From Mobula birostris (lineage: Eukaryota), in contig NC_092383.1 of assembly GCF_030028105.1 (NCBI RefSeq), positions 87,935,921 through 87,999,920 of the forward strand: a stretch of DNA of 64,000 bases, read 5' to 3'. Each line of letters opens with the position of its first letter. The stretch's first letter is position 1. The position numbers were made by a program, and so were the translations under genes. The notes beneath the pieces are model-generated. The model saw nothing but the letters and a program-made list of their open reading frames with translations. It searched no databases and was not told the origin of the DNA. Below, piece after piece: positions 16,554 to 52,999 of the stretch.

Positions 16554-16593
16554 ATGCTGTTTGCTGCTCTGCTATTGCTCTCTGTCATCTCAA
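16554..16593 (+). CDS. Exon 1 (signal peptide) of a CD300/pIgR-like receptor: MLFAALLLLSVIS
   Basis: ACAATGC start, hydrophobic 13 codons, donor A|GTAAGA in phase 1, matching the phase-1 acceptor of the first Ig exon. Confidence 0.85.
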
Positions 16594-17569
16594 GTAAGAC
16601 TTTCTTTTCACGTATGTTGAACTATAGCATCTAGTTACATATAACCTTAAAAATTGTTAATGCTAACCAGACACGTGATGAAACACTACCGCTGAAAATA
16701 AGCAACAGGGATCAGGAAAGGTGACAATCAATTTTACTTTTCAATACGAGGTGTAGTGAGTTGAGACAAAGTTGTGGGGGAGGATTTAGCAAAGAAATTC
16801 TATGGAGTACGTGCAGCACAGAGGGTTTGCCTTTGGCCCAATCTGTCCTCCATTGCTTTGGCGTGGTATGTCTCCCTGTGTGGGTTTCCTCCGGGTGTTC
16901 GAATTACCCCACCGTCCCACATCCCAAAGATGTACAGCATGGCAGGATAATTGTCCATGGTAAATTGTAGCTGAGTATCCAGGGGGTGTTGATGGGAGTG
17001 TGAGGAGAAGAGAAAGGGATTCATGGAAGTGAGTGTTTTATGGTCTGCACAGACTCAGTGAGCTGAAGGACCTGTTTCTATGGTTCTTGATCTACAGGTC
17101 TATGAAAATTCCACAACACACTTCACAAACAACAAAGTACTTTTGAAGTGCAAAGTTGTGCAGACAACCCAACAGTCAATTTGTGCATTGCAAACTTCCA
17201 CAATAGGCAATGCACTAATGACTGTCTAGTCCTTTAAGAACTGAGGGCCATCATGTCAGAAAATGAGATTATAGACTGGGTTTGGTATGGTGGGAGGCTA
17301 TTTGGACAATCTAGTCTATAGCAGCTCTTTGTAAGGACTGGTGGGGAATGAAACTGCATAGACCCATAGGGCTGAAATGGCTTCATTTTATGTTGTAATA
17401 ATAATTAGCCATTGACCTGGAGAAAGGAACAGAGATTAAGTTACATGAAACGTGTTTATGGAAATACTTTGTTGAGATTCTATAAATTATCAGCATGGTA
17501 GTGTTATGGTTCGTGGAGATTTACCAGGCTCCTGCCTGGATTAGACATGTTGTACAAAGATGGGTCGAG

Positions 17570-18680
17570 CGAGTCACTAGACACTAGACACTAGACACTA
17601 GAATACTACAGCACAGTACAGGCCCTTCGGCCCTCGATGTTGTGCCAACCCATATATTCCTAAAAAAATTACTAAACCCACACTACCCGTAACCCTCTAT
17701 TTTTCTTTCATCTATGTGCCTGTCCAAGAGGCACTTAAATACCCCTAATGTTTTAGCCTCCATCACCATCCCTGGCTTGTTATTCCAGGCACCCACAACC
17801 CTCTGTATAAAAAAACTTACCCCTGATGTCTCTGCCAAACTTCCCTCCCTTAATTTTGTACATATGCACTCTGGTGTTTGTTTATCGTGCACTGGGAAAC
17901 AGGTACTGACTGTCCACCCCATCTATGCCTCTCATAATCTTGTAGACCTCTATCAAATCCTCTCTCTTCCTTTTACGCCCCAAAGAGAAAAGTCGCAGCT
18001 CTGCTAACCTTGCCTCATAAGACTTGTTTTCCAATCCAGGTAACATCCTGGTAAATCTCCTCTGCACCCTCTCCATAGCTTCCACATCCTTCCTATAATG
18101 AGGTGACCAGAAATGAACACAATACTCTAAGTGTGATCTCACTAGAGATTTGTAGAGTTGCAACATGACCTCTCTACTTTTGAACTCAGTCCCCCTATTA
18201 ATGAAGCCTAGCATCTCAAAAGGCCTTCTTAACTATCCTATCAGCCTGTGCAGCGACCTTGAGGGATGTATGGATTTGAACCCCAAGGTCCCCCTTGACC
18301 CTCAAGAGTCAGGGCTCTTCGCTTTGGACTGAAGGATGATGAGAGGTGACATGATAGAGGTGTACAAGATGATAAGAGGCATTGATCAAGTGGACAGTTG
18401 CAGACTTCTTCCCAGTGCTGAATTGGCTGATACAAGGGGCAGAATTTTAAGATTATTGGTGGAAGGAATAGGGGGGCCGTCAGGGGTAGATTATTTTTAA
18501 ACATAAAGTGAGTGTTGCATGGAATGCCCTGCTAGGGTTGATAGTAGAGCAGGTACATAAAAGACATTTAAGAAACTCTCAGATAGACACATTGATGATA
18601 GGGAAAACATGGAGGGCTGCGTAGGGTTAGATTGATCTTAGAGTAGATTAAAAGCTTGGCACAACATGGTGGGCCAAAGG
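17570..18680. mobile_element. Two CR1 3' fragments: minus (17570-18260, (CACTAGA)n tail) and plus (~18300-18680)
   Basis: ORFs 17882-18214 and 17683-17922 are the CR1 RT C-terminus; ACTAGAC x4 near 17575-17600. Confidence 0.8.
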
Positions 18681-18699
18681 ATCTGTATGGTACTGTAGT

Positions 18700-19010
18700 G
18701 TTCTATGTGCGATGCAATGCTATTACAATGCTAGCAATCCAGGTTCAATTTCGCCACTGTCTCCACTGTGCTGTACTATTCTATATTCTACGTATCACTA
18801 TTACAGCACTAGCGATCCAGGTTCAATTCCCAATGCTGTCGGTAAAGCATTTGTACATCGTCCTTGTGATCACTAGGTTTCCTCCACGTGCTCTGGTTTC
18901 ATTCCACGTTCTAAAGACATACAAGTTCGTAGGTCAATTGATCACGTGTACAATTCGGCTGCGCGGGCTCATTGGGCCAGTAGGGCCTGTTACTGTAAAT
19001 AAAACAAAAT
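18700..19010 (+). repeat. HE1/V-SINE-like tRNA-derived SINE with duplicated head; related copies ~11440-11690, 16770-17030, 24715-24960, 25745-25945
   Basis: B-box-like CCAGGTTCAATT occurs twice; conserved body GGTTTCCTCC..GTGCTCTGGTTTC..CCAC..CCAAAGAC in all copies. Confidence 0.7.
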
Positions 19011-19053
19011 CAATCAATAAAAATTAATTTTTTTACTTTAATTTTACTGACAG

Positions 19054-19365
19054 AATCGTTGGCACGAGATCACACAATGGTGGTACGAGCAGGAGTGGGA
19101 GAAACAGTCACAGTGCGATGTTCACCTGTAGAGAAATGGGGAACCATAGTTTGGTGTAAAACAAACAATCAAAGGAGATGCAGTCCAGTAATGGATACGG
19201 AGAAATACAGTTACCATCCAAGAATATCAATCAGAAGACACACAAGATCTATTGTTGTAACCACAAGACAACTTATGGAGAGTGATTCAGGGATATACTG
19301 GTGTGGACGTTTAGACGGAAAATATATTGACATATCAGACATTGTAATGCTGAAGGTTACCGCAG
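19054..19365 (+). CDS. Ig V-type domain 1, CD300/pIgR/TREM family
   Basis: Acceptor TTTTACTGACAG|, donor GCAG|GTAAGG, phase 1-1, 312 nt; GETVTVRC..IVWCK..RRCS..RISI..DSGIYWCG with the family's extra C-C' cysteine pair. Confidence 0.93.
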
Positions 19366-20249
19366 GTAAGGCTTAGGCTTAAGTCAGGGTACCAGCTGGA
19401 CTGTCGTCCCATAATGAATGCATTGATCATGATGTAACCTTCACTTCCCAAAGTGTTATCAGAGAAGACAGAAGAGACAACAGATTCCAGACACTGAAAC
19501 AAGACATGAAACACGGGAAGAACTGAGGAGGCCACTTAGCAACTGTAGATGTGAAAGGTGCAAGTCAGATTGACCCTGCATCAGGAATGAGAGAGAAGTG
19601 GAAGGTTTGTTGATACAGAAATTAGTAAATTGGTTACACTGAACACAATATGCTGAAGGAACTCAGCAGCTCAGGTAGTCCAGCCTGACAGCGAAGGGGT
19701 CATTGGATAGGTTGTGCCAGTTACCGAAGAGCATGATCTCGCTCTTCCTGTGGTTCAATCTAACCCAGGATGCCAAATCAGAGCAGTTACAGATGCTGAT
19801 CAATCTGCGAGCTGACTGGGGATCTAAGCAGATGATTGCAGCTTTGTCCAGTTACAGGGAGATTTTGAAATGTGTGTCCGAACTGCCTGGCAATGTCACC
19901 CCTCTTCCTGCTCTCATCCTTCCTGATGGATTTGGCACAGGGTTGTATACAGCATGTAAACAAGGGAAGAGAGAGTGGAAACAATTTCTGACTCCGGTCT
20001 TCCGTAAGACTATCAGACACAGGAGCAAAATTAGAACATTTTGCTTTTTTATATAAAGTTTGTTTTAGATGTTTAACATTTGTCTTCTACGTAGTGTGTC
20101 AGTAGAAAAGAGCAAGTTTAAATTTCCCAACATACATTCTCCCAAAAAAAATTAAATGTTACAGAGAAATTTTTGGATTTTGTTAAAGAAAGTAACATGT
20201 TAAGTATTGGGCGACTTTTCAAATAAAACTTGATTACTTTGTAGGCATA

Positions 20250-21545
20250 TAGTCCAGTGCATGATTAAACAAAGATGACAAACAGGTGCTAATGATCAAT
20301 AACATAATGAGTTGAATGAACAAAACTGATCAGCTGAAACAGCAATGGGTGTAGAAGGAATCAAACTGGGCAAAGGACAAACTAAAAGGTGAGTGTGTGG
20401 TAGATGTGGCAGTTTAAGCTTCAAATCATCAATTCTTACACCATGGCAAGAGTGAGCATAGCATCAAGACACAGTGCAATATCTTCCATCACTAAGGTTT
20501 CTCTCAAGCAGAAAGTTCATGGCAGATGGAAGTTTCAAGAAGTGTTGTCCAAGTCTTCTGAAGATGCACAAAGAAACAAGCAAGGCTGAGGACCAGAAAT
20601 GAAGTGGTCAGCTACGGAATCTGAGTGCAGCAGATGTGAGATACATCAAACTGACATCCATTCAAAACTGGAAGAAGTCCAGCACTGCTATCAGCTCTAA
20701 ACTTGCAGAATCAACTGGAACCCAAGTACACCCCTCTATAGTCCGGGGTAATATTGTCAGGTGGTCTTCATGGAAGAGTTGCTGCCAAAAAGCTATTCCT
20801 CCACTTTGGAAACAAAGCCAAGAGAGTCGCCCATGGACATAGAAACTCATAGACTGGGGTGCTGAACACTGGCAGCCAGTGCTCTGGACTGATGATCAAA
20901 ATTTGAAACTTTTGACTCAGACAGGAGGCAGTTTGTCTGTAGAAGAGCTAGAGAATGCTACATGGATGAGTGTTTGCAGTCAACAGTGGCATGGCAGGGG
21001 TTCCCTGCAGGATTGCAGCTACATTTCTGCAAATAGATTTGATGGTCTGATCAGAATTACTGGAATCTTCAATGTTGAGAAGCACAAGCAAATTCTCATC
21101 CATCAGGGAGTTGTCTGATCAGTCCCAACATCTGCAACACGCCAATGACCCCAAACACACGGCCAAGATCATAAAGAACTTTCTCCAGCAAAAAATAAGA
21201 ACAAGGAGTTCTGCAATTGATGGTATGGCCTCCAAAGAGCCATGATCTTGAGGCTGTCTGGGATTACCTGGAGAGACAGAAGCAACTGAAACAGCCAAAG
21301 TCTTTCAGAAGAACTGTAGCAAGTTCTCCAAGATCCTTGGAAGAACCCACTAATCGATTTCCTTATAAAGTTGCATGACCGTGCCTATAAGAGAACTGAT
21401 GCAGCTTTAAAGGCAAGGTGTGGTCACACCAAATATTGATTTAATTTCACTTTTTGTAATTTTTTTGGTATTTATAATATTTTCATTTCATTAATTTTTT
21501 TAGTATCTTTGCTTTACAGGATTTTTTTACATGTGCCCAAGACTG
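20250..21545 (+). mobile_element. Tc1/mariner transposon, pseudogenised transposase ~20443-21439; right TIR present, left TIR not found
   Basis: MARVSIASRH start, VLWTDD..KFE, HTAK, WPP.S.DL..EAVW, ending GHTKY*; terminus ..TACATGTGCCCAAGACTG|TA. Confidence 0.85.
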
Positions 21546-21547
21546 TA

Positions 21548-23090
21548 CATCATAGAGTCATAGAGAAATACAGCACAGAAACAGGTCCTTTGCTCCATCT
21601 AGATGATGACAAAACCATTTAATCTGCCTACTTCCATCAATCTGCACCGGGACCATAGCCCTCCATATCCCTACTATCCATGTACCTATTCAAACTTCTC
21701 TTTAGTATTGAAATCACCTGAACTACTTGTGCTGGCAGCTCATTCCACACTCTCATGACTCTCTGAGTGAAGAAGATTCCCCTCATGATCCCCTTAATGT
21801 TCTCACCTTTTACACTTAACCATGGTTGTAGTCCCACCCAACCTCAGTGGAAGGAGCTTGCTTGCATTTACCCCATCCATACCCCTCCTAATTTTGTGTA
21901 CCCTTATCAAATCTCCTCTCAATCTTCTACATTCTTTAAAAAATACAGTGCGAACCTATTCAATCTTCCCTTATAACTCAGGTCCTCCAGACCCAGCAAT
22001 ATCCTTGTGAATTTTCTCTGCACTCTTTCCAACCTTGTTTACAATTTTCCTATAGGTAGATGACCAAAACTGTACACAATACTCCAAATTAGGCCTCACC
22101 AAAATCTTATACAACTTCAACATAACATCCCATGTTGGGGACTCAATACTTTGATTTCTGAAGGCCAAAGTGTCAAGAGCTTTCTTTATGGTCCTATCTG
22201 ACTGTGACACCACTTTCAATGAATCATGAACTTGTATTCCCAGATCACTTTGTCCACCACACTCCTCAATACCCTACCATTCTAGATCGGTCCCAGCATG
22301 CCGAGCGATGGACCACCTTCACCAGCTTCTCACGCAGGACCTTAACAAATGCCTTACTAAAGTCCACGTAGATAACATCCGCTGACTCGTCTTCATCCAC
22401 TTTCCTGTTATCTTCCTCAAAAAATTCCGTAAGATTGGTTAGACATGACCTACCACGCACTAAGCCATGCTGACTATCATTAACCAGTCCATATCTATAC
22501 AAATACTTATATATCTGGTCTCTGAGAATACCTTCCAATAACTTTCCCACAACTGACGACAGGCACACCAGCCTATAATTTACAGGTTTCTGTTTAAAGC
22601 CTTTTTTAAACAGTGAAACAATATTGGCTGTCCCACAATCGTACAGTAACTCTCCTGTCACTAAAGATGTTTTAAGTATCTCTGCTGGGGCCCTTGCAAT
22701 TTCTGCACTTCCCTCCCACAGGGTCTGAGGGAACACTTAGTCAGGCTGTAGAGAAAAATCCACCCTGATTTGACAAAGAGTAGCAAACACCTCCTCCTCT
22801 GTAATCTGTACAGGGTTTATGAAGCTGATACTGCTTTGCCTCACTTCTATAAACTCTATATCTGTCTCCCAAGAAAATACAGGTGCAAATACATTTAAAA
22901 TCTTCCCCATCTGTTTTGGCTCCACACGTGGATTAACATTCTGGTCTTCCAGAGGACCAATTCTGTCCCTTGCAATTCTTTTACTCTTAGCATACCTGTA
23001 GATTCCCTTACGATTCTCCTTCAGCTTGTCTGCTGGAGCAATTCCATGCTTTCTTTTAGCCTTCGTAACTTTTTGCATTATCTCTTAGGC
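21548..23090 (-). mobile_element. CR1 ORF2 fragment with (CATAGAGT)n tail
   Basis: ORFs 22266-22736 (NYRLVCLSSVVGKLLE..GRSCLTNL..YVDFSKAF) and 21971-22219. Confidence 0.88.
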
Positions 23091-23239
23091 TTGGCAAGGC
23101 CTGTTCTACTGGGGTCCCTCCCATCCATGGTCAGTAGTCCTCCCACACAGCCCCAGCTAACTGTAGCACCGAAGGTTCTGTCAGCATGATTCCCACTACA
23201 TTAGACCTCTCATTTCTTCCTTTTCTCATTTACCAGCAG

Positions 23240-25444: not shown

Positions 25445-25475
25445 AAACACCAGAAGATTTTAAAGACAACAAAAG
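25445..25475 (+). CDS. Short stalk exon (E)TPEDFKDNK(R/S)
   Basis: Acceptor ATCTCACCCCAG|, donor AAAG|GTGAGA; 31 nt, phase 1 to 2, bridging V2 to the phase-2 TM exons. Confidence 0.75.
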
Positions 25476-27978: not shown

Positions 27979-28120
27979 TGACCATGAGCTGAAAATTCAC
28001 CGGGTATCGACTCTGATCCAATGGATACTCTTCAGCGGTCTGGCTCTTTCAACTGTTTCAATAAAATGCATTTCTCAATGTCACTTGCTGATAATATGCA
28101 TTTTGATAAATTGCATTTAA
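27979..28120 (+). CDS. Degenerate tandem duplicate of the TM exon (DHELKIHRVSTLIQWILFSGLALSTVSIKCISQCHLLIICILINCI*), possible alternative terminal exon or pseudo-exon
   Basis: Acceptor TTTCCTTTGTCCATCAG|T, phase 2; homologous to 28233-28340 at nucleotide and protein level; no matching donor, reads to TAA at 28118-28120. Confidence 0.5.
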
Positions 28121-28232
28121 TAATATGCATTTCTCAGTGTCACCGATAATGTACACCTAGATAAAATGTAGTTCTCAGTGTCATTTATTGACTATTTTGT
28201 GTGTAACTAATGATATCTTCTTGATCTGTTAG

Positions 28233-28340
28233 GAACTATGAGTTGATCATTCAAAAATTTTGGACTCTGACCCGTTGGATACTCCTTGGAGCTCTATTTC
28301 TTTGCACTGTTTTGATACATTGCATGACAGCTTTCCAAAG
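28233..28340 (+). CDS. Transmembrane exon A with Arg (NYELIIQKFWTLTRWILLGALFLCTVLIHCMTAFQ), activating type
   Basis: Acceptor CTTCTTGATCTGTTAG|G, donor AAAG|GTAGAT; 108 nt, phase 2-2, open in the phase set by the stalk exon. Not in the ORF track. Confidence 0.8.
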
Positions 28341-34075: not shown

Positions 34076-34183
34076 GAACTTCAAGATGTACAAATCTCTT
34101 CACATGCACCAGGAACTTTGCAGTGCACACACATCTCCAGTTATACCCAGCGTAACTTCACCTGCTCTCGAACCTCTCCCTTA
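34076..34183 (+). CDS. Candidate phase-2 exon (RNFKMYKSLHMHQELCSAHTSPVIPSVTSPALEPLP*): tail of the TM-A isoform, or remnant of a mucin-like exon
   Basis: Strong acceptor CTCTTTAATTTCCAG|G in unique sequence; open 35 codons in phase 2; the phase-0 frame is also open, so the reading frame is uncertain. Confidence 0.4.
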
Positions 34184-34914
34184 GCCCGACAGTGTACAGG
34201 TGGCAGGGTTGCATAGCAGTTAGTGCAACGTTTTACATTAACAGCGATAATCGTGCAATCAATCGTGGATCAATTCCCACTGCTGTCTTTGAAGAGATTG
34301 TACATAATCCCAGTGACTGCATTGGTTTCTGTTGTGCATTTAATATTTCAGTAATATTGTAAATGAATTGTTTGACTAAGCCTTCTTGCTTTCTTTGAAT
34401 AATTAATTTAAAATAATTCATATTGTGGGTTATATGTAAAAGTACATTAATAGCATACTATACATCATCACATCACCGTGTCATACATGAGTGCCTTGCT
34501 CAGAGCAAAAACTAAGCTAAGACGTGTATTCCCAGCTCTGTGTTTCCTTTCAATTGGTTTTACGTTTTGGAATTACAAATCACAACAGTAGGTGACAAGG
34601 ACATTTTATAGAGCTCAAGATGTCAACCTACCTGGTGAAGTGCAGCAAGAGGCTCAAGTTAAGAAGAACCACGTGAGATATTTGAGTTTTTGAAAAGCAG
34701 CGCAGCACGTACGTCTTCCTAAAGGGACAGACGTGGTTGAGTCAAAAGAGGCAGAAAATGGGAAAATTCAAGGGTTTAAAAATAGTGAGTACTGAGTGAT
34801 AATAATCATAAGTTTTTTAAAGTGCAGAGACAACGAGCTATGCTGGAAAGATAGGCACATTCAATTGCAGAAGAAATAACTGCAATAAGTATACTGAGTG
34901 AATTGAAATACTCA

Positions 34915-37900
34915 TTTTTGTTTTTCATTTTTAAATCTTTTTTATTGATTATTATTGAAAATCAACAACAAAGAAAAATACATCAAGATAATGAAGACAA
35001 CATATCCATATGTAAAATAAGAGTTAAACTGTCAACCAAACTGAACAATCTATCAATAATAATAAAAAAAAATCAAAATGTTAAAGCTTTTTTTTGGAAA
35101 AAGGAAAGAAAGAAAAAAGAACCCCTACTAACTAAAACAAAAAAAAACCCTGATAACAAAAAAAAGGGAAGAAAACCCATATGGAGCACAAACCCGGAGC
35201 TATACGCCATACAGGCTTCCATAAAAAAAGACATCATTCTGCCAACCAATCCATGTTCCCGAGCATCAGAAAAGGACCATCTTAATTAACTCAAATCAAA
35301 TGATAATAACGGGCAAAAGACCCCCACCTTTTCTCGAAGTCAATTCTAGGATCGGAAGTTCGACTTCTAATTTTTTTCCAAACTAAGACATAACATCACC
35401 TGAGAGAACCAGTGTATCAAAGTGGGAGCAGAGGCATCTTTCCATTTTAATAAAATAGTCCTTCTAGCCAATAATGTGACAAATGCAATTACGTGTTGGT
35501 CTGATGTAGAAATACTATGAATATATTGAGGAATTATACCAAACAAAACTGTTAAGTTATTAGGTTGTAAATTGATTTTTAAAGCTTTAGAAATTGTAGA
35601 AAAAATAGATTTCCAAAACTGTTTCAATACGGAACACGACCAAAACATATGTGTCAATGTAGCTATCTCAGTTTTACATCTGTCACACTGACTGTTTACA
35701 TTAGGAAATGTTTTAGACAATCTATCCTTTGTCAAATAATAACGATGTACAATTTTAAATTGAATTAGAGAATGACTGGCACAAATCGAAGAAGAGTTGA
35801 CCAACTTCAAAATTCGCAACCAATCCTCTGTTATCAAGATCACGTTAAGCTCTCTTTCCCAATCTTGCTTAATCTTAAGTAAAGAATAGATATCCTGTTG
35901 TAATAGTAAATTATAAATTTTCCCAATAAAACCTTTCATTAAAGGGTTCATTTTAAAAATAATGTCTAACAGGTCAGAATCTTGTATATATGGAAAATTA
36001 CTTAAATATTCTTGTAAGAAATGTCTGACCTGAAGACATTACGAAAAATGTGAATATGAAAGAGAATATTTAGTTACTAATTTCTCAAAGGACATCAATC
36101 AGCCTTCTTGAAACAAATCCATGAAAGAAAAAATTCCTTTATTCCTCCAAAGAGAAAAGGTAGGATCACTAAGGGAAGGTTTAAGTAAATAGTTTCGATA
36201 AATTAAACTAAAAAGGTTAATTTTTTTTAAGATTAAAAAACTTACGAAACTGGTACCAGATTCGTAATGGCTGCTTAATCATAGGATTTATATTTAAAAT
36301 AGAAATTTTGGCTAATTGTACAGGTAAAGGAGCTCCTAATAATGAAGTTAAACAAAATTGTTTCACAATTTTCAATTCCAGCTCAACCCATGGTGGTCGT
36401 TCCTTTTTATCGGTCCAGTATAACCAAGAACACGCATAACGTATATTAACCACCCAATAATACATTCTTAAATTAGACAAAGTAAGACCTCCACCCTTTT
36501 TTAATTTTCATAAATGACATATTCCAATTCTTGGTCTTTTATTATTCCAAACAAAAGATGAAATAATAGTCAACCTGATCAAAAAACTTCTGAGTTAGAA
36601 AAATAGGGATATTTTGAAATACATATAAAAATTTTGGTAAAATCATCATTTTAACTGCATGAATTTGACCAACTAATGAAAGTGTAAGTGGATTCCATCT
36701 AGAAAAAAATTGCTTCATAAAATCCACTGAGGGAACTAAATTAGCTCCATAAAGGTCTCCATAATTTTTAGTGATGATAATACCTAAATATTTAAAAGAA
36801 ACCAGAACGTTAAAAGGAATCTCATCATATATAGAAGCAGAATCTTTTAAAGGAAATAATTCACTTTTATGCAGGTTTAATTTATATCCTGAAAACAATC
36901 CAAATTCATTGAATAATTTCAATAAACTAGGAATAGATTCTTCCGGATTCGAAACATAAACCAAAAGATCATCCGCATAAAGGGAAATCTTATGACTAGT
37001 CCCATTTATAGAAATTCCTTGAATATCTTTGGCTTCACGAAGTGCAATAGCCAAAGGTTCCAACATCAAATTAAATAACACAGGGCTCAACAGACATCCT
37101 TGTCTTGTACCCCGCGAAAGTCGGAAAAAGGGGGATCTACAGTTATTAGTAATAACAGTGGCAATAGGGCTTTTATATATCAATCTAATCCATTTATTAA
37201 AATTAGTACCAAAGCTAAGTTTCTCTAAAACTTTAAATAAATATTTCCATTCAACTCTATCAAATGCCACTTCAGCATCTAGAGAAACAACACACTGGGG
37301 AGTCTTAGACAAGGATGAGTATATAACATTTAACAGTCTCCGAGTGTTAGAAAAGGAATAATGGCCTTTTATAAAACCTGTTTGATCCTGAGAAATAATT
37401 TTAGCTAGTATATTCTCCATCCGATTAGCCATTATTTTGAAAGAATTTTAGTGTCCGCATTTAATAATGAAATAGGTCTATATGAAGCACAATCTGTAGG
37501 GTCTTTATCTTCCTTAAGAATTAAAGAGCTGTGTACATACATCTATTGATGCTTCTGGACACATCTTCAGTGATGTTCCTGGAATCATCGGGTGTTTCAG
37601 GTCTTTCAACATCATACAACCTCCTCCACGTGACCCAGCCGGGGCTGATCAGACCCCAGCTTGTGTCCAGATGGCTAGCTACTTATGACTCCATGGCTCC
37701 CCTCTTTTGAGCCACAGCCATCTTGAGGCCCTCTCTGCTGCATCGGTAGTACTGCGGATGGCTCTCCTCTTCCTCTCTCCCTCGATGCCCAAAATGCTGA
37801 AGGCTCTAACTAAAGAAGTTTCATAAAATGTGGAAGGTAACTCTCCCAGCAGAAAAGAAGCTTTAAGCATTTCCAACATATCAGGAGTAAGCAAATCTAC

Positions 37901-40900
37901 AAATTTTTTTATAAAATCCTACGGAAAAACCATCCAATCCAGGAGCTTTACCAGATTGCATTGAAAGAATAGCTTTCTGAATTTCTCTTTCAGTAAAAGG
38001 ACCATCAAGAATTTGCTGATCTTCAACAGATATTCTAGGAAAATCAATCTTTTGGTTTATTGTTAGAAGGGTCAGCTGGAAACTGAGATTTATACAGTTC
38101 ACTATAATAGTCTTGAAAAATGTTATTAATATCTTCATAATTACAAGCTAAACTACCATCTCCCTTACGAACTTTTAAAATTTGTCGTTTAGCTTTAACT
38201 GCTTTAAGTTGAGATGCTAATAGTTTGTTACTTTTATCTCCAAACACATAAACTTGACTTTTTAATTTAAGCAAATTTCTTTCAATAGGATAAGTTAATA
38301 GTAAATTATATTGTGATTGAAGTTCAACCCTTTGTTTGAATAAATCAACATTAGGAGAAACTGGGTAAGTGTTGTCCAGGTCTTTAATTTGTCTTGAAAT
38401 TCTATCTAACTCTGTTTTTGTCTGTTTCTTGAGCTTAGCCAAATAGGATATTATCTGACCTCACAAATATGCTTTAAGTGTATCCCATATAATCAATTTC
38501 GAGACATCTCCCGTATTATTAAAAAGAAAGAAATCTCTTATCTGAATCTCTATAAATTTGACAAAGTCTGAACGTTGTAATAAATTTTCTGGGAAGCGCC
38601 AAGGAAAGTTTACATTACTAACATCATTTAACTCAAAAGGTAAACTTAAAGGTTCATGACAGGACAGCAATAGCATCATATTCACTTTTCTGAACTTTAG
38701 ACAAAAATCGGAAATCAGTTATAAAATAATCAATTCTCGAATATTTATTATGAACATATGAATAAAAAGAATAATCTCTATCATTAGGATGTAAATTTCT
38801 CCAGATTTCTATCAAACCATAATCAATTAAAAAGGAATTAATAAGTGTTGCTGAACAACTCGGAAGCTGCTGATTGGTTGAACTCTTGGCAATCAAAGGG
38901 TTTAAACAACAGTTGAAGTCACCTTCCATCAGCAGCATATATTCATTTAGGTCTGGTAATAAACCAAATACATTTTTTAAAAAAAGAAGGATCATCTACA
39001 TTCGGTCCGTGTAGATTAATCAAGACAATCTTTCTATTACAAATTGTTCCTTTAATAATTAAAAATCTACCATTATTATCTGAGATGATGATTTCTTGAA
39101 TGAATGAAATATTAGATTTAATAAAAATAGATACTCCCTTTGTTTTATTTTGACAAGTAGCATGGTATTGAAGGCCCTTCCATGTTTTCAAAAATCTATT
39201 TTGATTGCCCATTCTGATATGAGTTGCTTGAGCAAAAATTATATCGGGCTGGAATCGATTAATAATTTAAAAAGTCTTCTTTCGCTTAATAAGGTGATTC
39301 CAGCCACGTACATTCCGACTAATAACGTTTATCTGTTTAAGTACCCTTGAGTGCCATTAAACAGAACAATACACGCATACCATGGCAGGCTAATCAAAGA
39401 TGGCGGTGATGAGTATAACCAAATAGAAAACACGCATGCTCCGGAACTCCATAATGGGGAAAAATACAGGAAATGTGTGAAAAAAATCCCACAATAAACC
39501 CCAAAATGCAAAAATACCCCAAACATCCCACCATCCCCGAAGATAGAAATCCAGCACAGGAGAAAAAGGCCGGAACGCATCCCCAAGAAGAAAAGCAAAA
39601 GGACGGAACTCCGCGTGCCGCACAATTTAAATAATGATTTAAAAATTTTTGCTCTCAATTCCCCCTCCCCTTACAAAGAAAATACGTAACCTTAAGATAA
39701 GAAAGCCCAGCAAAGAAGAAAAAAATGTTTATACTTAATCATTGAAAATAAACGAGGGAATGCAAAAATAGTCTCCAAAGACGTCAAAGCAATGCTATTA
39801 ACCCAAACAGTATAATCTCCAAAAAGCGAAAATAACTTACTACCTTATTTAACGAAAGAACTGCAGCTAATTATCTATTCCTAAACACTCCATAATATAA
39901 GAAAAAAGTCTATATAAACTGTAAGCAAACTATCATTTAATTAATAAAGAAAAAGGAAGATAGAAACAGATAACTAGTTAACAATCTATCCGCTGTATTA
40001 ATTCACTCCGTATACTAAACAGACTTCAAAAAAAAGTCATTCTTTAGTCAAACCAAGAAGATCACCTCTTCTTTCAGTAATCCATCGATCAGAGAATATC
40101 TTAAGCATACAGAAATCTTCAAAGCCTGTTTTCTTTCAGAAAATTATTCAGCAACTCTAATATCCTTCATACATCAGCCGATTCCACAACAGAGTTGACA
40201 AAATCCGATGCCGCTTGGGGATCCAAGAAGACACGAGGTGTAGAATCTTTAGGAAATAATTTTAATCTCGCCAGGTATCTCAGAGATGGAAAAAGTCTTT
40301 TTTCATAGGCTGTCTTCATGACGGATATGAATTTCATCCATTGTTCCATAACTTCCCGTGAATAATCTTCATGAAAACGGATCTCCGAACCGTTAAATTT
40401 TAAAACTTTCTGTTTTCTTGCACTTTTTATGATTTGGTCTTTAACTTTAAAGCAAAGAAAGTTAACTAAAATTGGTCAAGCTTTATCTGACGAAGTGAAA
40501 ATTCTGTGAGCTCTTTCAATATCGGGAGGCTGAGGTAGAATATCCGGAAACAGAGATTGAAACAGATTGGCAAAATAATCCAATAAATTCCCCTTCTCAG
40601 CACCTTCTTTAAGACCCACAATTCTAATGTTATTTCTACACAATCTTGCGTCTAAATCGACAATTTTGTGTTGAGCCTGTTCCAAGCGGGTTGAAATAGC
40701 CACAATCTGACGTTTCCATTCTTTAAACTAAGTATTCAAGGAAACAATATTTTCCTCAATAGTCTGTAAACTCTGTCGGAACGACTTCAACTCAGAAGTG
40801 TTATTGTCCATTTTGTTGTTGAGACCCATCAATGCACTTTCCAAACGCTCAGTTCAGACAGGCATATCTTCTAATTTTTCTTTTGAAGTTTTTCCCTTTC

Positions 40901-41082: not shown

Positions 41083-44000
41083 GAACTACTCAATGAGAAA
41101 CGCAGCCCAGTTTTAAAAGCATATTAGGTGTAAGAGCATACAGCTTGTTTAGAGGTTTTCAAGTATCATGAAAGAAATGCAGGAACATTTAGAATTGAAA
41201 CCATTTTTGCTTGTAGAATACTTTATGTTACAACAATGAAATCAAAAGGAAGGGGAGTCCATTTCAGTGTACGTTGCTGAATTGAAGAGGTTTTCAGAGC
41301 ATCATCAGTTCACTGGTGGGGTAAATAATCCACTGAGAAATTGTTTAGTTTGTGAAATACAACAACCAACAAACCATATTGAACTTATACGTGGTAACAG
41401 TAGGACAGCCAACATTGTGGGGATATGACCAGCTGAGACAACTGCAACTTGATTGGAGATCCACCCATCATTTGCATGCCACATCCCCTGCAATAGCGTC
41501 AACCAAAAACAAACTTTAAAAAGGGTACTGGATTGATGCCACAGCAGAGTCCAGGGCTAGCACTGGAAAACGCAAATATATCAAGGGTAAAATTGTGTTA
41601 AATAAAAGTAACACACCCAAGTTTTACAAAACACATCCTCTTTCTTACACTATCAGTGATAAAGTAGCCAGTGAGCTGGATCACATGTAGACCGATGGAA
41701 TTCTTTCCAAGGTTAGTTGGATCCATAGGGAACACAAGTGGTCCCAGCAGAAAGAAGAATGGGTGTCTCAATGTCTCTGGTGATTTACAGGTCACCATGA
41801 ACACGGTACTAAATGTAAACAAGAGAAAATCTGCAGATGCTGGAAATCAAAGCAATACACACAAAATGCAGGAGAAACTCAGCAGGCCAGGCAGCATCTA
41901 TGAAAAAAGAGTAAACGGTTGATGTTTCAGGCTGAGTCCCTTCATCAGATCTACCTGGCCACCCAAAAATGGCTGAAATGTGCAGCAGAAATCACAGAAC
42001 CCCCATTTTCACAAGTACCTGGATGAACTTACCCTTGACAGGGGATTGAGAGCTGTTGTACCATCTAAGCTCAAAGCTAAAGTGTTGGAGGAGCTACATG
42101 CCAATCACCTAGGTGTTGTCAAAATGAAAGTGTTCGCTCAAAGCTTTGTCGAGTGGGCCGGAATAGATCAGTAGATCAGGCAGCTTGCCATGCACTGTTC
42201 GGGACACCAACACATCCAGAAGAAAGGTATTTGCAGCTGTTCAGAACCACTTCCGGCAGTCACAGAGTCAACTCCTACAACCACCATGGACGTGGTGCAA
42301 GAACCTCAGATTGTTTCAGGGCTGCAAGCTTCTCCTGCCAAACATGGTGACCTCCTTTGTCAGGAAGGGTGTTATCCCACAAGTGTAAGAAATCCTCAGT
42401 GGCAATTAAATCCTCAGACCTGAACGGGACATGCTGTGGATGTTTATAAAGTAGTCACAGAGTTAGGAGGCTTGCATGCCTCAATGACCCAGAGAGTCCT
42501 AAGTGCCAGCGGCATAACAGGCAGTAAGTAAATAAGTATTATTTATATATACGTATATATGTGTATGTTGAGATTCATTCCATATTGAGTTGGAGTTTAT
42601 ATCTAAGCAGGGAGGAGTGTTGTGTATTTAATATCTCAGTAATATTTGAGTAATATTGTAAATGTATGTTTGATTAAGCATTTCTTGTTTCTTTAAATAA
42701 TTGATTGAAAATAATTGAAATTGCAGGTTATATATAAAAGTACATGAATGGCTTACATCATCACACCACCAGGTCATGAATGAAAGCCTCCCCGAAAGCA
42801 AAAAGCTCCATGTTTCCTTTCAAATATTTTAATGCTTTAGAGTTACAAAACATAACTGTTTCCTCCCACGTGTTAGTTTTAGTGAGGAGTGTGATTGCTG
42901 TGTTGGCTCCAGAATCATGACAACACCCACAGCACAATCCTTGGACTGTCTTGTTCATTGCTGCAAATCACATATTTCACCGTATTTTTTGAATGTTTTT
43001 ATGCACATGTGTCCAATAAAGGTAATCTTTCATTCCTGGTGGCACTTCACTTTCCATTACTGAAGCAACTAATCACAATCCTCCACCCCTCCACCCTGCT
43101 TCCAGCTCAGACAACACCCACTATACCATTACACTACAGCCATGGGCATTGACAGTTTCCCCCAGGCAAATACAGAACAATATAACCCTATTCAACACTC
43201 ACAGCACCAACACCCACCACTGTAGAGTCCCTACTGCACTATTCCTGCACCCACATAAAAAAATTATCACTGGTGTTTTCTGGAGAGGAATATCATCATC
43301 TTTGCTGCTTCTTCTCACCTCTCAGTTCCTAACATTGGATTTTCTATTTTTCTAGACGGGCTGACATGAAGCAGAACCCACAACACAGACAGATCGGTCC
43401 TTGTGCAGGGTCTCAACCTGGAATGTCGACGGCATCTTTCCACACCACAAATGCAGCTCAACCTGCTGTGTGCCTCCAGTAAATAGCTTATTGCTCCAGC
43501 TTCCAGCATCTACTGCCTGTTGTAAATTCACAGGTGAATCAGTGCAACAATTGCAGACCCTTCTAAAGATTCCAAGATTCACCCAAGCAACCAATAGTAT
43601 TTTGACCTAAACACAAGAGATTCTTCAGATGCTGGAAATGCAGAGAAACACACAGAAAATGCTGGACGAACTCAGCAGGTCAGGCAGCATCTATGGAGAG
43701 AAATAAAGATTTGATATTTCAGGTTGAGACCAATGAAGGGTGTCAGCCAGACATGTCGACTCTTTATTCCTCTCCATAGATAAGACCATAAGACAAAGGA
43801 GCAGAAGTCGGCCATTTGGCCCATCGACTCTGCTCCGCCATTTTATCATGAGCTGATCCATTCTCCCATTTAGTCCCACTGCCCCGCCTTCTCATCATAA
43901 CCTTTGATGCCCTGGCTACTCAGATACCTATCAATCTCTGCCTTAAATACATCCAATGACTTGGCCTCCACTGCTGCCCGTGGCAACAAATTCCATAGAT

Positions 44001-45499: not shown

Positions 45500-47116
45500 A
45501 TGTTGGAGTAACTGAGACTATTGATATGCTAGCGTTGGTCTACTGGGATCCAGTTGTAAAAGGGAAACTTCCATTCTTGTGGGATCAAATACTCCCATTT
45601 TAGAGGGCTCGTGGGAGCATGCAAGGGGAGAAATAGAAAGCATTTTTTGAAAAGCCTGTCCAATCACCCGGTGTTCAGGGTTGCTTTTGAGAAGGTGCAA
45701 GTTCCTTTGAAGCAGAACTATGAGCATATAAAGGGAACTGTGTGGTACACCCAGTCTAAGCATGTCATGTTAAGTCCTGAAGGAGGAGCTAGAGTGACAG
45801 AGGACACCCTTTTCCAAGGGAGATCTTGCCAATTGGTGGTTAAAGATGCCCAGTAGCGCCTGCTTAAACTGAAGAAAGCTGAGTTCATTCAGGGGACAGG
45901 GGGAACTGAGTCTCCAGAAGATACAAGTGACAGACTGGGGGGGGGGGGCAACCCCTCATTGACAAGGAGTGTCTGAGGCTGCAGAAGCTGAAGCTGAAAT
46001 AAGGAGTTCTCAGAGAACCAGAAAACCCCGAGATAGGCTGGCATATGATGCACCTGGGAAGCAAAGTGTGGTGTCAATTCTAATAGTGAGATATGTTATC
46101 TCTATTTACAAATGGATTGAGGATCCTAAAATCACAAACTTCATTTAAATACTGTGTTATTAATAATGGTTTAATAAGTTCCAAAGGCTTACAAAGTCAT
46201 GAAGACTTGACTATTTTTGGAGGGACGAGACTGTAATACCCTGTTTAAGATTTCTACTGCTATGCTCTGAGGTATTTTTATTTTAGCAGTTTTCTGCAGA
46301 AGCAGTGTGTCCTGTTAGAGTGTTTTGGCCTCAGCAAAACATAAGTAGCCACTTTGTCCAACTTACGAATGTTGTGTCAGCCAGTCGCATTTGTCTTGGT
46401 AACCTGTTGTTACTTTCTGCCCAGTGGCATGTTATGGAAGATTCGAGACATCTAGACAGGATCAGTTTTCTACAGAACTTTAGTCTGATTTGGGGTCTTT
46501 TTGGGAGGAGCTGCAAAGCGGAGCACAAGGAATAGTGCCTGGAGAATGTCGCTCGAAGGAGAGACCCTGTTGTAAGAAGTGCTCTGTGCAGAGGAATGGT
46601 TCAGAGGAGGAAGTGACAGTACTCCTGAGTTAGCCAGTTCATTCAAAATAGTCTTTGAGGGAAGGTCGAACTGTGGCTGGTGTCTTTCACGCACAACGTA
46701 GATTCAGCCCATGAGTAATCAAAGTGAAGCATCCCGAGTACTTCAGAAATGAAATCCGATGTCGATGTGCACATTTTGGCTGGTTTAACTGTATTTTTGT
46801 TTTCTTTTCCTGTTAACTGTTTATTAATGTTAAAATATTCACAAATACATTTTTCTTTGTAACTTTATGCCAGTGTACAATCCGTTATTTTAGGAGTAAA
46901 TGAAAACTTTGCACGGGGCAGTATTTATACAGCGTTCACTACAATTCACATTCTTCCCTGAAGCATTCCAACTTTCCTGTTTGGTTGAACCAAATCATAC
47001 CGACCCTCGATGTGTGTTTCTTCTGGAAGGTGGCCTGCTCACCACTGAGTCACGTGGCTGTGAGCAGAGTTAGCCAACGAGCCAAGTTTGTATACGAGCT
47101 CGGTGAGAGGGTTACA
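45500..47116 (+). mobile_element. Third, plus-strand copy of the PNMA-type Gypsy family: pol remnant and 3' LTR 46232-47116
   Basis: ORF 45611-45856 matches 3717-4022 (HPVFRVAFEKVQ); LTR TGTAAT...GAGAGGGTTACA preceded by purine-rich GGAGGGACGAGAC. Confidence 0.8.
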
Positions 47117-47277
47117 ATCCTATCCCTGAGAATTTTATCCAGCAATTTTCCCACAACTGATGTGAGAATCACCAGACTATAGTTCCCAGGATTTTCCCCG
47201 TGTTTCCTTCTTAAATAGAGGTACAACATTAGCCACTTGCCAGTTTTCTGGGACCTTGCTGTGGCTACAGAAGACAC

Positions 47278-47670
47278 TGTCACGGTCCCATCTGGCTATC
47301 CCTCATCTCGCTCCTATCTCCTTGATTGTGCCTTAATTCCCGTCGTCTGATTCTCAATTGCTGCTAGTTCAATTAATTACAGCACACCTGGTTCCCATCA
47401 GAGAATGCAGGATAAGAACTCTGGCGTCACAGCCATGGGTCGCCATTTTGTTGGTCAATTTCAGTGAGTGTTAACCTCATTTTCTGATCCCTTAGGACTG
47501 ATAGTTCTAAGCTTCGCTCCAATTTCTAGATATTCTACGAAAACCACGCCTCTGAGTCAAGACGCCCCTGGTTATCTGTTTCACGTTTGCAACTGTGCTA
47601 GCACCTCTCAAACCTGTCTCCGTGCCTGTGTCCTGCACTTGGGTTCATCCCCAGTCACTCCCTTGCAACA
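47278..47670 (+). mobile_element. Solo LTR with 5-bp TSD GACAC
   Basis: TGTCACGG...TTGCAACA; GACAC at 47273-47277 and 47671-47675. Confidence 0.8.
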
Positions 47671-48069
47671 GACACCGCACTAGGACATCTTCAAGGAGCG
47701 GTGTCTCGGAAAGACAGCGTCCATTATGAAGGACCCCCACCACCCAGGGCATGCCATTTTCTCACTATCATCAGTCAGGAGGTACAGAAGCCTGAAAGCA
47801 CACACTCAGTGATTCAGGAACAGCTTCTTCCCCTCTGCCATCTAATTCCTAAATGGACATTGAACCTATGAACAGTACCTCACATTTTTAATATAATTTC
47901 TGTTTTTGCACAATTTTTAATCTATTCATTATATGTATACTACAGGTATCAGTGATTTACTTACTTATTTTTATTTTTTTCTTCTATATTATGTATTGCA
48001 TTGAACTGCTGCTGCTAAGTTAACAAATTTCATGACACATGCGGTGATCATCATTCTGATTCTGTAAGC

Positions 48070-49060
48070 TACTGATCAAAGACCCTGCAATTCCTTGCCT
48101 CCCTCAATAACCTGGGGTAAATCTCATCAGGCCTTGGGAACTTCCATCTTAATACTCAGTAGGAGGCCCAACACTTCTTCCTCCTTGACATCTAAATACC
48201 TAGCATATTTATACACTCAGCACTGATTCCCTGGTCTTCACTATCCTTTTCCATGGTAAACATTCAACCAAAGTACTCAATAACTACTTGAATTACATTT
48301 TCAACAACCGCTTCCTCTGACAGCTCTTCCATACATTGACCACTCTTTGGGCGGAAAAGTAGAATCTCAACTCACCTCGACAAAAAATCTTCCTCTTTAA
48401 TCTCTCCACTCTTTCCTGTGCCCTCTATTCCCCAACTCTGGCAGGAAAAAAACTGTGTGCATTTACCATGTCAATATCCTTCATGATTTTATACACCTCC
48501 ATAAGGTCAACCTTCATTCTCCTACACTCCAAGGTAGTAAATCCTAGCCTGACAAATATCTCTGTAGCTCAGTTACCCAAGTCCAAACAACATGCTTGTA
48601 AATCTTATCTGTCCTCTATTATTTTCAGCTTAGAGGCATCTTTCCTGCAGCACAGTGACTAAAACTGTACAGAAAACTCCATTACTAAAATCTTGTTTAA
48701 TGCAATATAACATTCAGAAACCTATATTAATGCCATGACTGACGAAGGACATCATGCCAGGCCGATTCTCCACCACCACGCCAACATGTGACACCACTTT
48801 CAATGAATCATCTACTTATACTCCTCTGACCCTCTCAGCTACAACACTCCCCAGAGCCCCACCTTTCACTATGAATGTCCTGTCCTCATTTCTGTTCCCG
48901 AAATGCCACAGCTTATCTGAACTAAACTGCATTTGCTATTCCCACTAATCTAGCCAATCAATATGGTTCTTGACAACCATCTTCACTACCTATGATATTA
49001 CCTGTTGTAATGTCATCTGTAAACATATGTACCAGGCCTTGTACATGCCAATTTAAATAA
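48070..49060 (-). mobile_element. Old CR1 fragment(s)
   Basis: Degenerate similarity to the CR1 RT region at 21800-22300. Confidence 0.65.
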
Positions 49061-49109
49061 TTAGCCAAAATCAGTTTCCAGCACTTCCCCTGTCGCTCAT
49101 GGAACAGCT

Positions 49110-49615
49110 CACATTTACCTCAGAAGGACTGGAAAGGAAGGGGGAAGATGTGAGAATAAGAAAGTGGCGAAGTGGAGGAGGGACAAGCTAGAATGCGATA
49201 GGTGATGCCAGGTTGTTGGAGGGGAGTGCGGGATGAAGTAAGAAGCTGGGAGGTGATAATTAGAAAAGGGAAAGGGCTGGAGAAGTAAGAACCTGATCAA
49301 ATAGGAATGTGGATCATAGGAGAAAGGGAAGAAGGCGGACACGTAGTGTGAGGTGATAGGCAGGTGAGAAGAAATATTAGAAACTAGAGTGGGGAAATTA
49401 AGAACGGGTAAAGGGAGGGAGAATTTGCTAGAATTTGGCTTTGCTGTGATCATTTATTTATTCATTATTTTTGTAATTTAGAGTAATTTTATGTCTTTTC
49501 CCTGCACTCCTGCCACAAAACAACAAATTTCATGTCATGTAATTCTCCAACATGAAGTTGGAGAAATTGAATTTCATGCCATCAGCTTGGAGGATACCTA
49601 GACCTAGTAATACAG
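49110..49615 (-). mobile_element. Penelope-like element 3' fragment (GIY-YIG C-terminus and pyrimidine-rich tail)
   Basis: Minus strand GLGILQADGMKFNFSNF resembles the PLE motif RLGSLQPDGMNIDFSNF; CT-rich tail. Confidence 0.65.
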
Positions 49616-50644
49616 TTATGTCATTGCTAGTTGGTGATAAACTATTGATCAGAGAGCATTTTCTGAACCCTAATAGCGTGAATCCAGAATTACTTGACTC
49701 CATTTATACTGAGCTCTTAACAGAAGCAATCAATTTCCTTTGGTAGAATTATGTAATTGACAAGGGATCGTAGCAGGAACAAATCTGTATTTGGATTGTC
49801 TAATTCCTTTGTGTTTCCTCAAGTACAAACAGGATTATTTGCAGCAGCACACACAAAATGCTGCAGGGACACAGTAGGCCAGACAGAATCTTTGGAGGAT
49901 GGGGGGATATACAGTTGACTTTATTGATCAAGAACCATCCTTAGGTTTGGAAAGGAAAGAGGAAGAAGCCAGAATAAGAAGGTGGGGGAATGGGAAGGAG
50001 AAAGCAGATGTGGTAAGTAAGAGACAGGAGTAATGAAGTTACAGTCTGGGAAGTGATACGAGGAAGAGGTAAAAGATGATCACCTGGTCTCACCTGTCAC
50101 ATGCAACCTCTGTTTTAAATTGATTCCCCTCTTGTCCGAGACTTCCCCATTATGGGAATCATCCTTTCTGCATCTACTCTGTCTTGGCTTTTCAACATTC
50201 AAAAGATTTCAATGAGATCCCCCTCATCCTTCTAAATTCCAGCTACTACAGACCCAAAGCTATCAAACGTTCCTTGTATGATAACACTTCCATTCCCAGA
50301 ATAGTCCCTGTATAGTTTTAGATGACATGCAAACCTTCACAAACATCTAAGAAAGTAAAGGTGCTGCCACACTTTCTTTGCAATGGCACAGATCCTTTGA
50401 AATTGTAACAAGAAGTTTGTAACACCCTTGACGAGGACTAGCTCATGGACTTCCAGTTTTCCTCTACTGGTCAATAATAATATCTTTGATCTTGCTGATA
50501 TTGAGTGAGAGGCACATGTGTTCAAATCTACATCATATTTCTACTTAACAGATCAAAAAAAAGCAGAGGGCAATACTGGAGAAGGAGAAAGTTTGAACAT
50601 TCCCATTAGACTAGATCTGTCAATGTCTTTGTCATATTCTGCAG

Positions 50645-50734
50645 GAAGCCAAGACCATCCCAATGGCATGTTCTACTTGCAGTTGCCTTGTCAGCTCTCT
50701 TCCTGCTGCTCATTACTGTCATCATTATACTCAG
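50645..50734 (+). CDS. Transmembrane exon B, uncharged (KPRPSQWHVLLAVALSALFLLLITVIIIL), inhibitory type
   Basis: Acceptor TCTTTGTCATATTCTGCAG|G, donor CTCAG|GTGGGA; 90 nt, phase 2-2; ~21-residue hydrophobic helix. Not in the ORF track frame. Confidence 0.82.
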
Positions 50735-52517
50735 GTGGGAGACAAGACTGAAAAGTTCAGTTCAGTTAAGTAGAAAGATGACCGCTTAAAAATTCCTCTC
50801 CTCTCTGAGACGCCTTTAACAAATTCAGACCATTTGCCTCGTCTACCAAAGCAACCAGTTCATACATTTGCAAAGCACTGGTTAGACAACACCTTGATAC
50901 AGATGTATAAGATGACAAGAGGAATAGATAGAGTGAACATCCAGACCCTATTACCCAGGATGACAATGACTAATACAAGAAGGCACACATTTAAGGTAAT
51001 TGGAGTAAAGTTTGGGGGGTATATCAGAGGTAGTTTTTCATACAGGGAGTGGAATGCACTGCCAGGGTGGTGGTAGAGACAAATGCATTCAGAACATTCA
51101 AGAGATTCTTAGATAGGCACATGGATGAAAGAAACTGGAGGCCTATGTGGGAGGGGAAGGGTTAGAATGGGCTTGGAGGAGGTTAAAAAGTTGGCACAAC
51201 ATTGAGATCCCAGTAGCTTATTTGCTGCATGCTGCATGTCTCTACAAAATCAATACCTCTGTCAGATGGTTGGAAGCTCCAGTAAGATGATACAAGTGTT
51301 GTGGTTATACCTAGAATGAACAAGAATGTTTTTCTTTGAAAGTGGTACAAAGGATGTAATGAAAGCAGCAAACCAGGAGCTAAATGAAGGAGTTCAAAAG
51401 CAGACGAAGCAATAGGTTCAGACATTCACACAATTTTATTTTGTTTTGTAACTCCAAGTGAAGTTTATTGTCATGTGAACAAGTACAGCGAGGTAATTTC
51501 TGTTCGCCAGGGTAGGGGAAATTAAAAGAATAGATTTAATATGAGAGGAGGGAAAGTTTAAAAGGGAACTGAAGGACATCTTCTTCTTACAGGGGGTGGT
51601 GGGTATATGGAAAAAGTTGCCAGAGGAAGCTGTAGAGACAGATGCAATTACATTTAAAAGACATTAGGACTGGTACATGAATAAGAAAGGCCGAATAGGA
51701 TATAGGCCAAATGCCGGCAAATGGGACTAATTCAGATGGACATCTTGGTTGTTGGCATGGGTTTAACATTGCAGTGCAGTAGATTAATTTGGTATTCTGT
51801 ACAGAACGCCCTGGTGTTACCTCTATTCTGGTTTCAGAAATTGCCCTTACAGACTGTGGCTCTTTCAGTTTTATGGTTTTAATATTCTGTTTTTTGTCCA
51901 TTAGTTCTCGTCGCCATTTCACGCAATATGTTAGTTTTTTTGTGGTTTTGTGGTTTAATGTTCTTGCCATCTGCATGATGTGACTTTTGTGTGGGGGAGG
52001 GTGTTTAATGTTTTTCTTTGAACAAACTCCGTGGTTAAATTTGTTTTTATGGTTATCTGAAGAAGATGGATCTGAGTTTCCAGCACGGATGAAGAGCCTC
52101 AGTTTGTAATGTTGACTCCTTCTTCCTGTCTGTCAGTACTGACTGGCTTGCTGAGGTCCTCTAGTCTAGCATGTTCTGTCTGTTGCTCTGGACTTCCAGC
52201 ATCTGCGGAACCTCTTGTATTAGTAACAAGGTAGTGTTCATGGGTTTATGAACCACCCAAAAGTCAGAAGGCAGAGGGGAAGAAACTGTTCCTAAATTTT
52301 TGAGGGTGGGTCTTCAGGATCCTCATCTTCTCCCCGACTGTGGTAAAAAGAAGAGGCCATGACCTGGATGGTGTTTACTCATTCCCCGTGGCATTTCCCC
52401 AGGCTTACTTTCTATGTTCACATAGATTTATTTTCTCTTTATAGACCTTAGAAAAGCTCTTAGGGTTCGTTTACATACTCTGTGTTGGTTTACTTACTCT
52501 CCACTGAGTTCTCACAG

Positions 52518-52734
52518 ATGCTCTCTTCTGAGTTCACTCCCCTGTCAACAGTCCACCACTAACTATATTTCTCACTTTACCATACAGGAAATCCCTGTGG
52601 CGTATGCCAGTGTGAAGCAATGCAGAGATCACATGGAAAACACGCACATCAATCTTCCTGTTCAACATTCTCCTGAAAATGCCAGAGCACAACATTACTC
52701 AGAAACTGTAGTGTATTGAGTGGTTGCTGACTAA
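52518..52734 (+). CDS. Terminal cytoplasmic exon with ITIM VAYASV and a TGA-interrupted second ITIM (VVY*VV)
   Basis: Two in-frame acceptors: TTCTCACAG|A (52518, phase 2, fits TM-B directly) and TTTACCATACAG|G (52588, phase 0). TGA 52717-52719, TAA 52732-52734, AATAAA 52755-52760. Confidence 0.72.
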
Positions 52735-52999
52735 TAATAATTAATTCAAGATCCAATAAAAACCTAGAAAACATCGCAAATACAGTTGGGTGAACGTTTC
52801 TTTGTTTTAGTGCAGCTGTTTCCCACAAGCCCTCAACCATGACAGCATTCTGTGGGGCTGTGTTGGACTGCTGCAGGAGCAAGCAGCTGGTGGCCACATT
52901 GTTCTTCATCCCTCTTTGTCCCTGAACAAGCTCAGGGGTGTTCAGCAACCACAGGCTTGATGAAACCTGTAGGCAAGACAAGGTGGCATGGAGCCCAGT

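Follow-up and report, generated by a model that had tools for sequence, protein, structure and literature searches.

We examined a 64,000-nucleotide (nt) window of DNA from the manta ray Mobula birostris, a repeat-rich vertebrate sequence without any N, which holds a receptor gene with immunoglobulin (Ig) domains and, downstream of it, a separate transmembrane (TM) exon and a last exon with an immunoreceptor tyrosine-based inhibitory motif (ITIM). All positions given below are those of the window. The receptor gene, which is activating in type and is called gene A here, is one complete cartilaginous-fish CD300/pIgR-like receptor gene; the names gene B and gene C are used for two separate M. 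birostris genes. The initial annotation had proposed that one ligand-binding head is connected, within a single locus, to an activating as well as an inhibitory module, and had offered as an alternative that the distal module is the remnant of a neighbouring paralog that lacks an ectodomain.

Exons and products of gene A

Gene A was found in two rounds, an exhaustive HMMER search with its first V domain (V1) and then a second search that took the closest full-length match as query. The proteins reached in this way come from rays and sharks and bear the names 'polymeric immunoglobulin receptor-like' or 'CMRF35-like'; the hits include a Leucoraja erinacea relative (P0010). Gene A itself is annotated in RefSeq as the M. 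birostris 'polymeric immunoglobulin receptor-like' products XP_072134937-41 (isoforms X1-X5), and the V1, V2, stalk and TM sequences of the window are identical to these products. The exons are as follows.

16554-16593, + strand: leader exon of gene A, with the ATG at 16554 and a phase 1 end; present in the models that match P0171-P0173 and P0178 exactly
19054-19365, + strand: V1 exon, of V-set type and with the additional cysteine pair of CD300/pIgR; phase 1 at both ends; equals the M. birostris RefSeq proteins
23237 (or 23240)-23551, + strand: V2 exon, a V-set domain; phase 1 to phase 1; matches Pfam V-set and pIgR D5
25445-25475, + strand: 31-nt stalk exon (..TPEDFKDNK), entered in phase 1 and left in phase 2; present in every rebuilt model
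27979-28130, + strand: TM-A', a second, tandem copy of the TM exon in which Gln replaces Arg; it has lost its donor and is read to a stop; terminal exon of X4
28233-28340, + strand: TM-A, the Arg-bearing TM exon (..FWTLTRWILLGALFLCTV..); phase 2 to phase 2; used by X1, X2, X3 and X5
34076-34186, + strand: alternative terminal coding exon with the short tail of X3; the rebuilt model equals P0171 exactly
43356-43482, + strand: main terminal coding exon with the tail RADMKQNPQ..VCLQ of X1 and X2; the models equal P0172 and P0173

The leader, V1, V2 and stalk exons of the initial annotation, with a stalk that ends on two nt of a codon, are all borne out by the rebuilt models. Four of the five isoforms (X1-X4) could be assembled from exons of the window with a residue-for-residue match to RefSeq, and no difference was found between these four products and the window; X1-X5 are automatic predictions that stand under a misleading pIgR name. 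The four assemblies are:

X1 (P0172): after the stalk, 28233-28340 joined to 43356-43482, with V2 acceptor 23237
X2 (P0173): after the stalk, 28233-28340 joined to 43356-43482, with V2 acceptor 23240 and one Ala fewer
X3 (P0171): after the stalk, 28233-28340 joined to 34076-34186
X4 (P0178, 279 residues): the stalk joined straight to terminal exon 27979-28130

The tandem CAG/CAG acceptor of V2 (23237/23240) accounts for the pair X1 and X2, which differ by the single Ala. The gene span recorded for P0172, 26,929 base pairs (bp), corresponds exactly to 16554-43482. By tblastn, exon 43356-43482 matches the entire tail of P0166, and it is followed by an ATTAAA/AATAAA signal at 43702. Both this exon and the TM duplicate at 27979-28130 had been missed earlier; the junction 28340>34076, which had been listed, is used by RefSeq X3. 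The RefSeq annotation calls no second gene within 10 kb of the gene A coding span. The terminal exon of X5, which encodes only ..QRE-stop, could not be placed with certainty, position 35769 being a candidate. Across the terminal-exon region at 43298-43522, models from the ray Hypanus sabinus read two frames: that of its X4 is the manta frame, and the other, read by its X3, has stops in the window.

The proximal TM exon translates to ..FWTLTRWILLGALF.. and carries the conserved Arg, as had been claimed, and the annotated products are of the activating type. The tails of X1-X3 and X5 are free of both ITIM and immunoreceptor tyrosine-based activation motif (ITAM). All five RefSeq isoforms use either the Arg-TM exon or its Gln duplicate, and none of the five uses 50645 or 52588, the starts of the distal exons. 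The duplicate, TM-A', shows 78% DNA identity to the TM exon with its flanks (tblastn E=4e-5), and it also serves as the X3 terminal exon (P0177) in gene C, a near-identical duplicate of gene A. A milder one-gene switch than the one proposed is already annotated, in that gene A alternates tandem Arg-TM and Gln-TM exons (X4); the Gln-TM isoform may perhaps be an adaptor-uncoupled or decoy-like receptor.

The assignment of the head to the CD300/pIgR type also held up. V1 matches Pfam V-set above the cutoff (E=6e-7) and V2 matches it below the cutoff, and the closest solved structures of both V domains in PDB are pIgR D5 (E=1.6e-13, and 1e-23 for V2) and CD300/CLM chains. Both domains have the extra intradomain cysteine pair (V1, ..RC..WCK..RRC..YWCG; V2, ..HC..LCK..NRC..YWCG). 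The W-x3-R-W motif of the TM recurs in further family members, including proteins of a chimaera (Callorhinchus) and a shark (Mustelus). We searched the window for additional Ig exons by tblastn with V1 and V2 and with a profile hidden Markov model built from 380 family V domains, which was run against the six-frame translation. Neither search found an Ig exon other than V1 and V2 in the whole 64 kb, in agreement with the earlier statement that no further one lies at 25.5-50.6 kb.

The distal TM and ITIM exons

Two features make up the distal module.

50645-50734, + strand: TM-B, an orphan neutral TM exon fragment of another inhibitory subfamily, with 69-71% TM identity to P0140 and P0087
52588-52722, + strand: last exon, likewise orphaned and from that inhibitory subfamily, with one ITIM (VAYASV); 65% identical to the tail of P0087

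The initial annotation had counted two intact TM exons. Both are real, the Arg-bearing one as well as the uncharged hydrophobic stretch at 50645-50734, which lies between AG and GT; however, the second module is not intact, having lost two of its tyrosine motifs and apparently its native donor. The VAYASV exon followed by AATAAA was found as described, with the signal at 52755.

The homologues of the module are P0087, a Hemitrygon akajei protein (XP_072886839), and P0140, from Mobula hypostoma (XP_062922428). Pairwise comparison with these ray proteins gave an E-value of 1e-12 for TM-B, and 6e-20 for the last exon against the P0087 tail, and at the DNA level the similarity to the P0140 gene runs on, in another frame, to 52922, which is into the 3' untranslated region (UTR). 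By comparison, TM-B is only 46% identical to the TM of gene B, the inhibitory partner of gene A. Since its identity to the TM of P0140 and P0087 is 69-71%, the distal module comes from a different subfamily. P0087 and P0140 have V domains of their own, other than those of gene A, and a long Ser/Thr stalk, and P0087 has three tyrosine motifs. The window copy has a homologous TM and last exon, but its 5' parts are gone and one motif is left: relative to the P0087 tail, VVYASV is kept as VAYASV, STYMNL has become NTHINL (Tyr to His), and VVYSVV reads VVY-stop, with the stop at Y+1. What the module retains is a neutral TM and one of the three tyrosine motifs. The P0140 model itself fuses an Arg-TM receptor with one V domain to a downstream inhibitory receptor, and in the last exon it is out of the ITIM frame and runs into the 3' UTR; P0140 is probably a mis-merged or decaying gene.

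The connection between the two distal exons also looks degraded. By BLASTP, TM-B resembles its homologues only as far as the hydrophobic core; the homologues extend about 10 residues (..CAKLRQKMKTG) past the proposed donor. The TM-B frame first meets a stop at 50787, and position 50785 lacks a GT. Set against the ..LRQKMKTG of the homologues, the read-through peptide beyond 50734 (..LSRKMTA-stop) gave no alignment to rely on, as BLASTP does not reach past that core. About 16 residues of P0087 lie between the TM and the last exon, which, taken with the exon phases, suggests a mini-exon of 50 nt; Smith-Waterman scores for a mini-exon in 50.7-52.6 kb were within those of shuffled controls, and nothing like it was found at 50735-52587. 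Scores for a stalk of the P0087/P0140 type in 43.5-50.6 kb were likewise within shuffled controls, and no V exon for the module was found upstream of 50645 in the window on either strand. Both homologues align to the last exon from acceptor 52588, not 52518. The junctions 50734>52518/52588 had been proposed as alternatives, and 52518 does give an open frame; VAYASV is in frame only through that acceptor, which the homologues do not use, whereas a direct join of 50734 to the homologous acceptor 52588 meets a stop after 9 codons.

A protein database search with only the P0087 tail matched just P0087 and P0140, none of the hits coming from M. birostris. Repeat copies closely flank TM-B, at 50127-50311 and 50894-51202. 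When 47-53.5 kb was compared with the rest of the window, dispersed repeats were the only similarity, and nothing there resembled the TM-A region as a paralogous intron would. Most likely, the distal TM/ITIM module is a pseudogene relic and the upstream head is not spliced to it.

Gene B, related models in other rays, and repeats

Gene B corresponds to M. birostris XP_072134943-45 (P0176, P0175 and P0168). Its head and stalk are 100% identical in protein to those of gene A over 231 residues, through ..ETPEDFKDNK (P0172 vs. P0176). After the stalk come a neutral TM (..SGPKIWYILLPLLLGLLVLLLIVLLIKKRRR..) and a tail that bears three ITIM-like motifs, and these TM and tail exons were not found in the window. 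From start to stop gene B spans 23,063 bp, against 26,929 bp for gene A, and its models, if placed at the gene A leader, would run to about 39.6 kb and stop within a minus-strand long interspersed nuclear element (LINE). Therefore, with this hypothetical end in a LINE and the TM and tail exons outside the window, gene B is a separate gene. Gene C (XP_072134948-51) is a near-identical copy of gene A. The earlier view that the family is paired, with activating and inhibitory members, is thus upheld by genes A and B, which are classical paired receptors with identical heads, opposite tails and distinct loci. The identity of their heads suggests a very recent duplication or gene conversion.

Gene B also bears on the reading of exon phase. 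Because it joins the same stalk sequence to a TM of its own, the phase 2 stalk-TM junction is a family-wide trait, and therefore the phase match between the gene A stalk and TM-B is no evidence for alternative splicing here.

A gene of Hypanus sabinus (XP_059806113-117) has isoforms X3 and X4 that carry the Arg-TM, and an isoform X2 that is a complete inhibitory form and starts 28.8 kb further downstream. Its X1 (XP_059806113) has the head of X3 and the stalk, TM and ITIM part of X2, and as a predicted model it is a chimeric read-through over two tandem genes. It resembles the one-gene idea, in prediction only, in that an activating head is placed on a downstream inhibitory stalk, TM and ITIM. 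It differs in that its inhibitory part comes from a full gene downstream that has a head of its own, whereas the manta module has none.

Most of the sequence at 28.5-47 kb is debris of LINE and other retroelements. A long LINE-like element lies on the minus strand at 35370-40730, within the last intron of gene A, and holds an open frame of 301 residues with a reverse-transcriptase domain (36545-37447; RVT_1, E=4e-32). More LINE fragments, with pieces of reverse transcriptase or endonuclease, occur at 29.9-34.0 kb. Two same-orientation copies of one large retroelement, at about 3.3-9.6 kb and 58.3-63.3 kb and so about 54 kb apart, bracket the gene; they have near-identical open frames, such as 6199-6432 and 60098-60331, both on the minus strand.

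Interpretation and comparison with known receptors

The best explanation, which we hold with considerable confidence, is that the window carries a complete activating-type gene and, downstream, the orphan 3' relic of another inhibitory family member, and that the true inhibitory twin of gene A is separate. In gene A the order is leader, V1, V2, stalk, Arg-TM and a short tail without a tyrosine motif. By analogy with known receptors, its membrane Arg would recruit an ITAM-bearing adaptor and gene A would thereby activate; gene B, with the same head, would by the same kind of analogy recruit phosphatases through its ITIMs, and the Gln-TM isoform would presumably be uncoupled. The 3' end of gene A varies among the terminal exons at 27979 (the Gln-TM duplicate), 34076 and 43356. 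The neutral TM and last exon that lie about 7 kb past its last exon are the orphan remains of a different inhibitory member that has lost its own V domain, stalk and mini-exon, along with two of its three tyrosine motifs.

Several observations weigh against this explanation, and some of them speak for the proposal of an alternative 3' cassette, in which the distal neutral TM and the ITIM exon would be spliced to gene A and one head would serve both signs. The AG and GT around TM-B look usable, the acceptor having a pyrimidine tract and cag/G and the donor GT standing at 50735. The phase of the stalk fits TM-B, and the proposed isoform can be written without a stop, through 52518 to VAYASV and on to the poly(A) signal at 52755. 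No competing Ig exon lies upstream, and the H. sabinus X1 model joins an activating head to a downstream inhibitory stalk, TM and ITIM. The RefSeq models are predictions, and rare read-through transcripts may exist; as for the native donor and the mini-exon, protein alignments suggest that both have been lost. Nevertheless, we regard the alternative cassette as very unlikely. The isoform is missing among the five annotated for gene A, and no protein with the window tail was found in the database. The module stems from another subfamily and keeps only one tyrosine motif out of three, and its ITIM frame needs the non-homologous acceptor 52518, while the homologous 52588 gives a stop. Transcription would also have to pass the annotated terminal exons at 28.1, 34.2 and 43.5 kb, and a dedicated inhibitory gene with an identical head exists in gene B. 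The claim of a single locus that serves both modules from one head is therefore not supported, with none of the five isoforms using a module that is degraded and of another subfamily, and the remnant of a neighbouring paralog without ectodomain, which had been the alternative, is what the evidence favours. In a broader form, read-through or intergenic splicing in ray MDIR/pIgR-like clusters might graft activating heads onto inhibitory modules, the manta 25475>50645>52518 being an occasional form of the gene A head with a neutral TM and a single ITIM; we consider this quite unlikely.

It is highly improbable that TM-B and the ITIM exon instead form the 3' end of a separate gene, inhibitory and intact, with 5' exons that were missed or lie outside the window. 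P0087 and P0140 are indeed complete receptors with their own V domains and long Ser/Thr stalk, and the module preserves a splice acceptor and a poly(A) signal. However, no family V exon occurs in the 50 kb upstream on either strand, no stalk or mini-exon rises above background, no gene is called at the module, and the tail has a Tyr-to-His change and a premature stop; the 5' exons would moreover have to sit upstream of gene A, which would nest gene A in an intron of >50 kb. As fragments of LINE and other repeats crowd this region, chance open frames might also be suspected in place of exons. The likelihood of this is close to nil, and the idea is already refuted by the homology to ray proteins, since the TM and the tail specifically match two of them (pairwise E=1e-12 and 6e-20) and the DNA similarity continues into the 3' UTR.

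One gene giving both signs would, if true, be an unusual paired-receptor design at the base of the jawed vertebrates. What remains is a clean cartilaginous-fish pair, activating and inhibitory, with protein-identical heads on separate genes, together with an Arg-TM motif common to chimaera, shark and ray members of the family and an annotated Arg/Gln alternative TM exon in gene A. The relic described here is also a caution: orphan TM/ITIM relics in repeat-rich clusters mimic alternative cassettes, because exon phases are common across the family.

Activating CD300 members of mammals mostly have Lys or Glu in the TM; unlike them, the family of gene A has an Arg in a conserved W-x3-R-W motif. 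Gene A is already predicted in RefSeq, and by description its family matches the skate MDIR/CD300-like receptors. Our literature search found no paper on these ray genes beyond a skate MDIR description. That source presents the skate MDIRs as a multigene family with V-set domains of the CD300/pIgR type and with activating and inhibitory members in a batoid (PMC3031540). Gene A is like them in the type of its V-set domains and in belonging to a family with both signs, a likeness drawn by description only. Paired receptors elsewhere are treated in PMC2194075, PMC4042635 and PMC3533184, and the arrangement of genes A and B is like that of MAIR-I/II (that is, CD300a/d), Siglec-5/14 and SIRP alpha/beta, in which near-identical heads are carried on separate genes. 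Unlike these systems, genes A and B are a cartilaginous-fish example.

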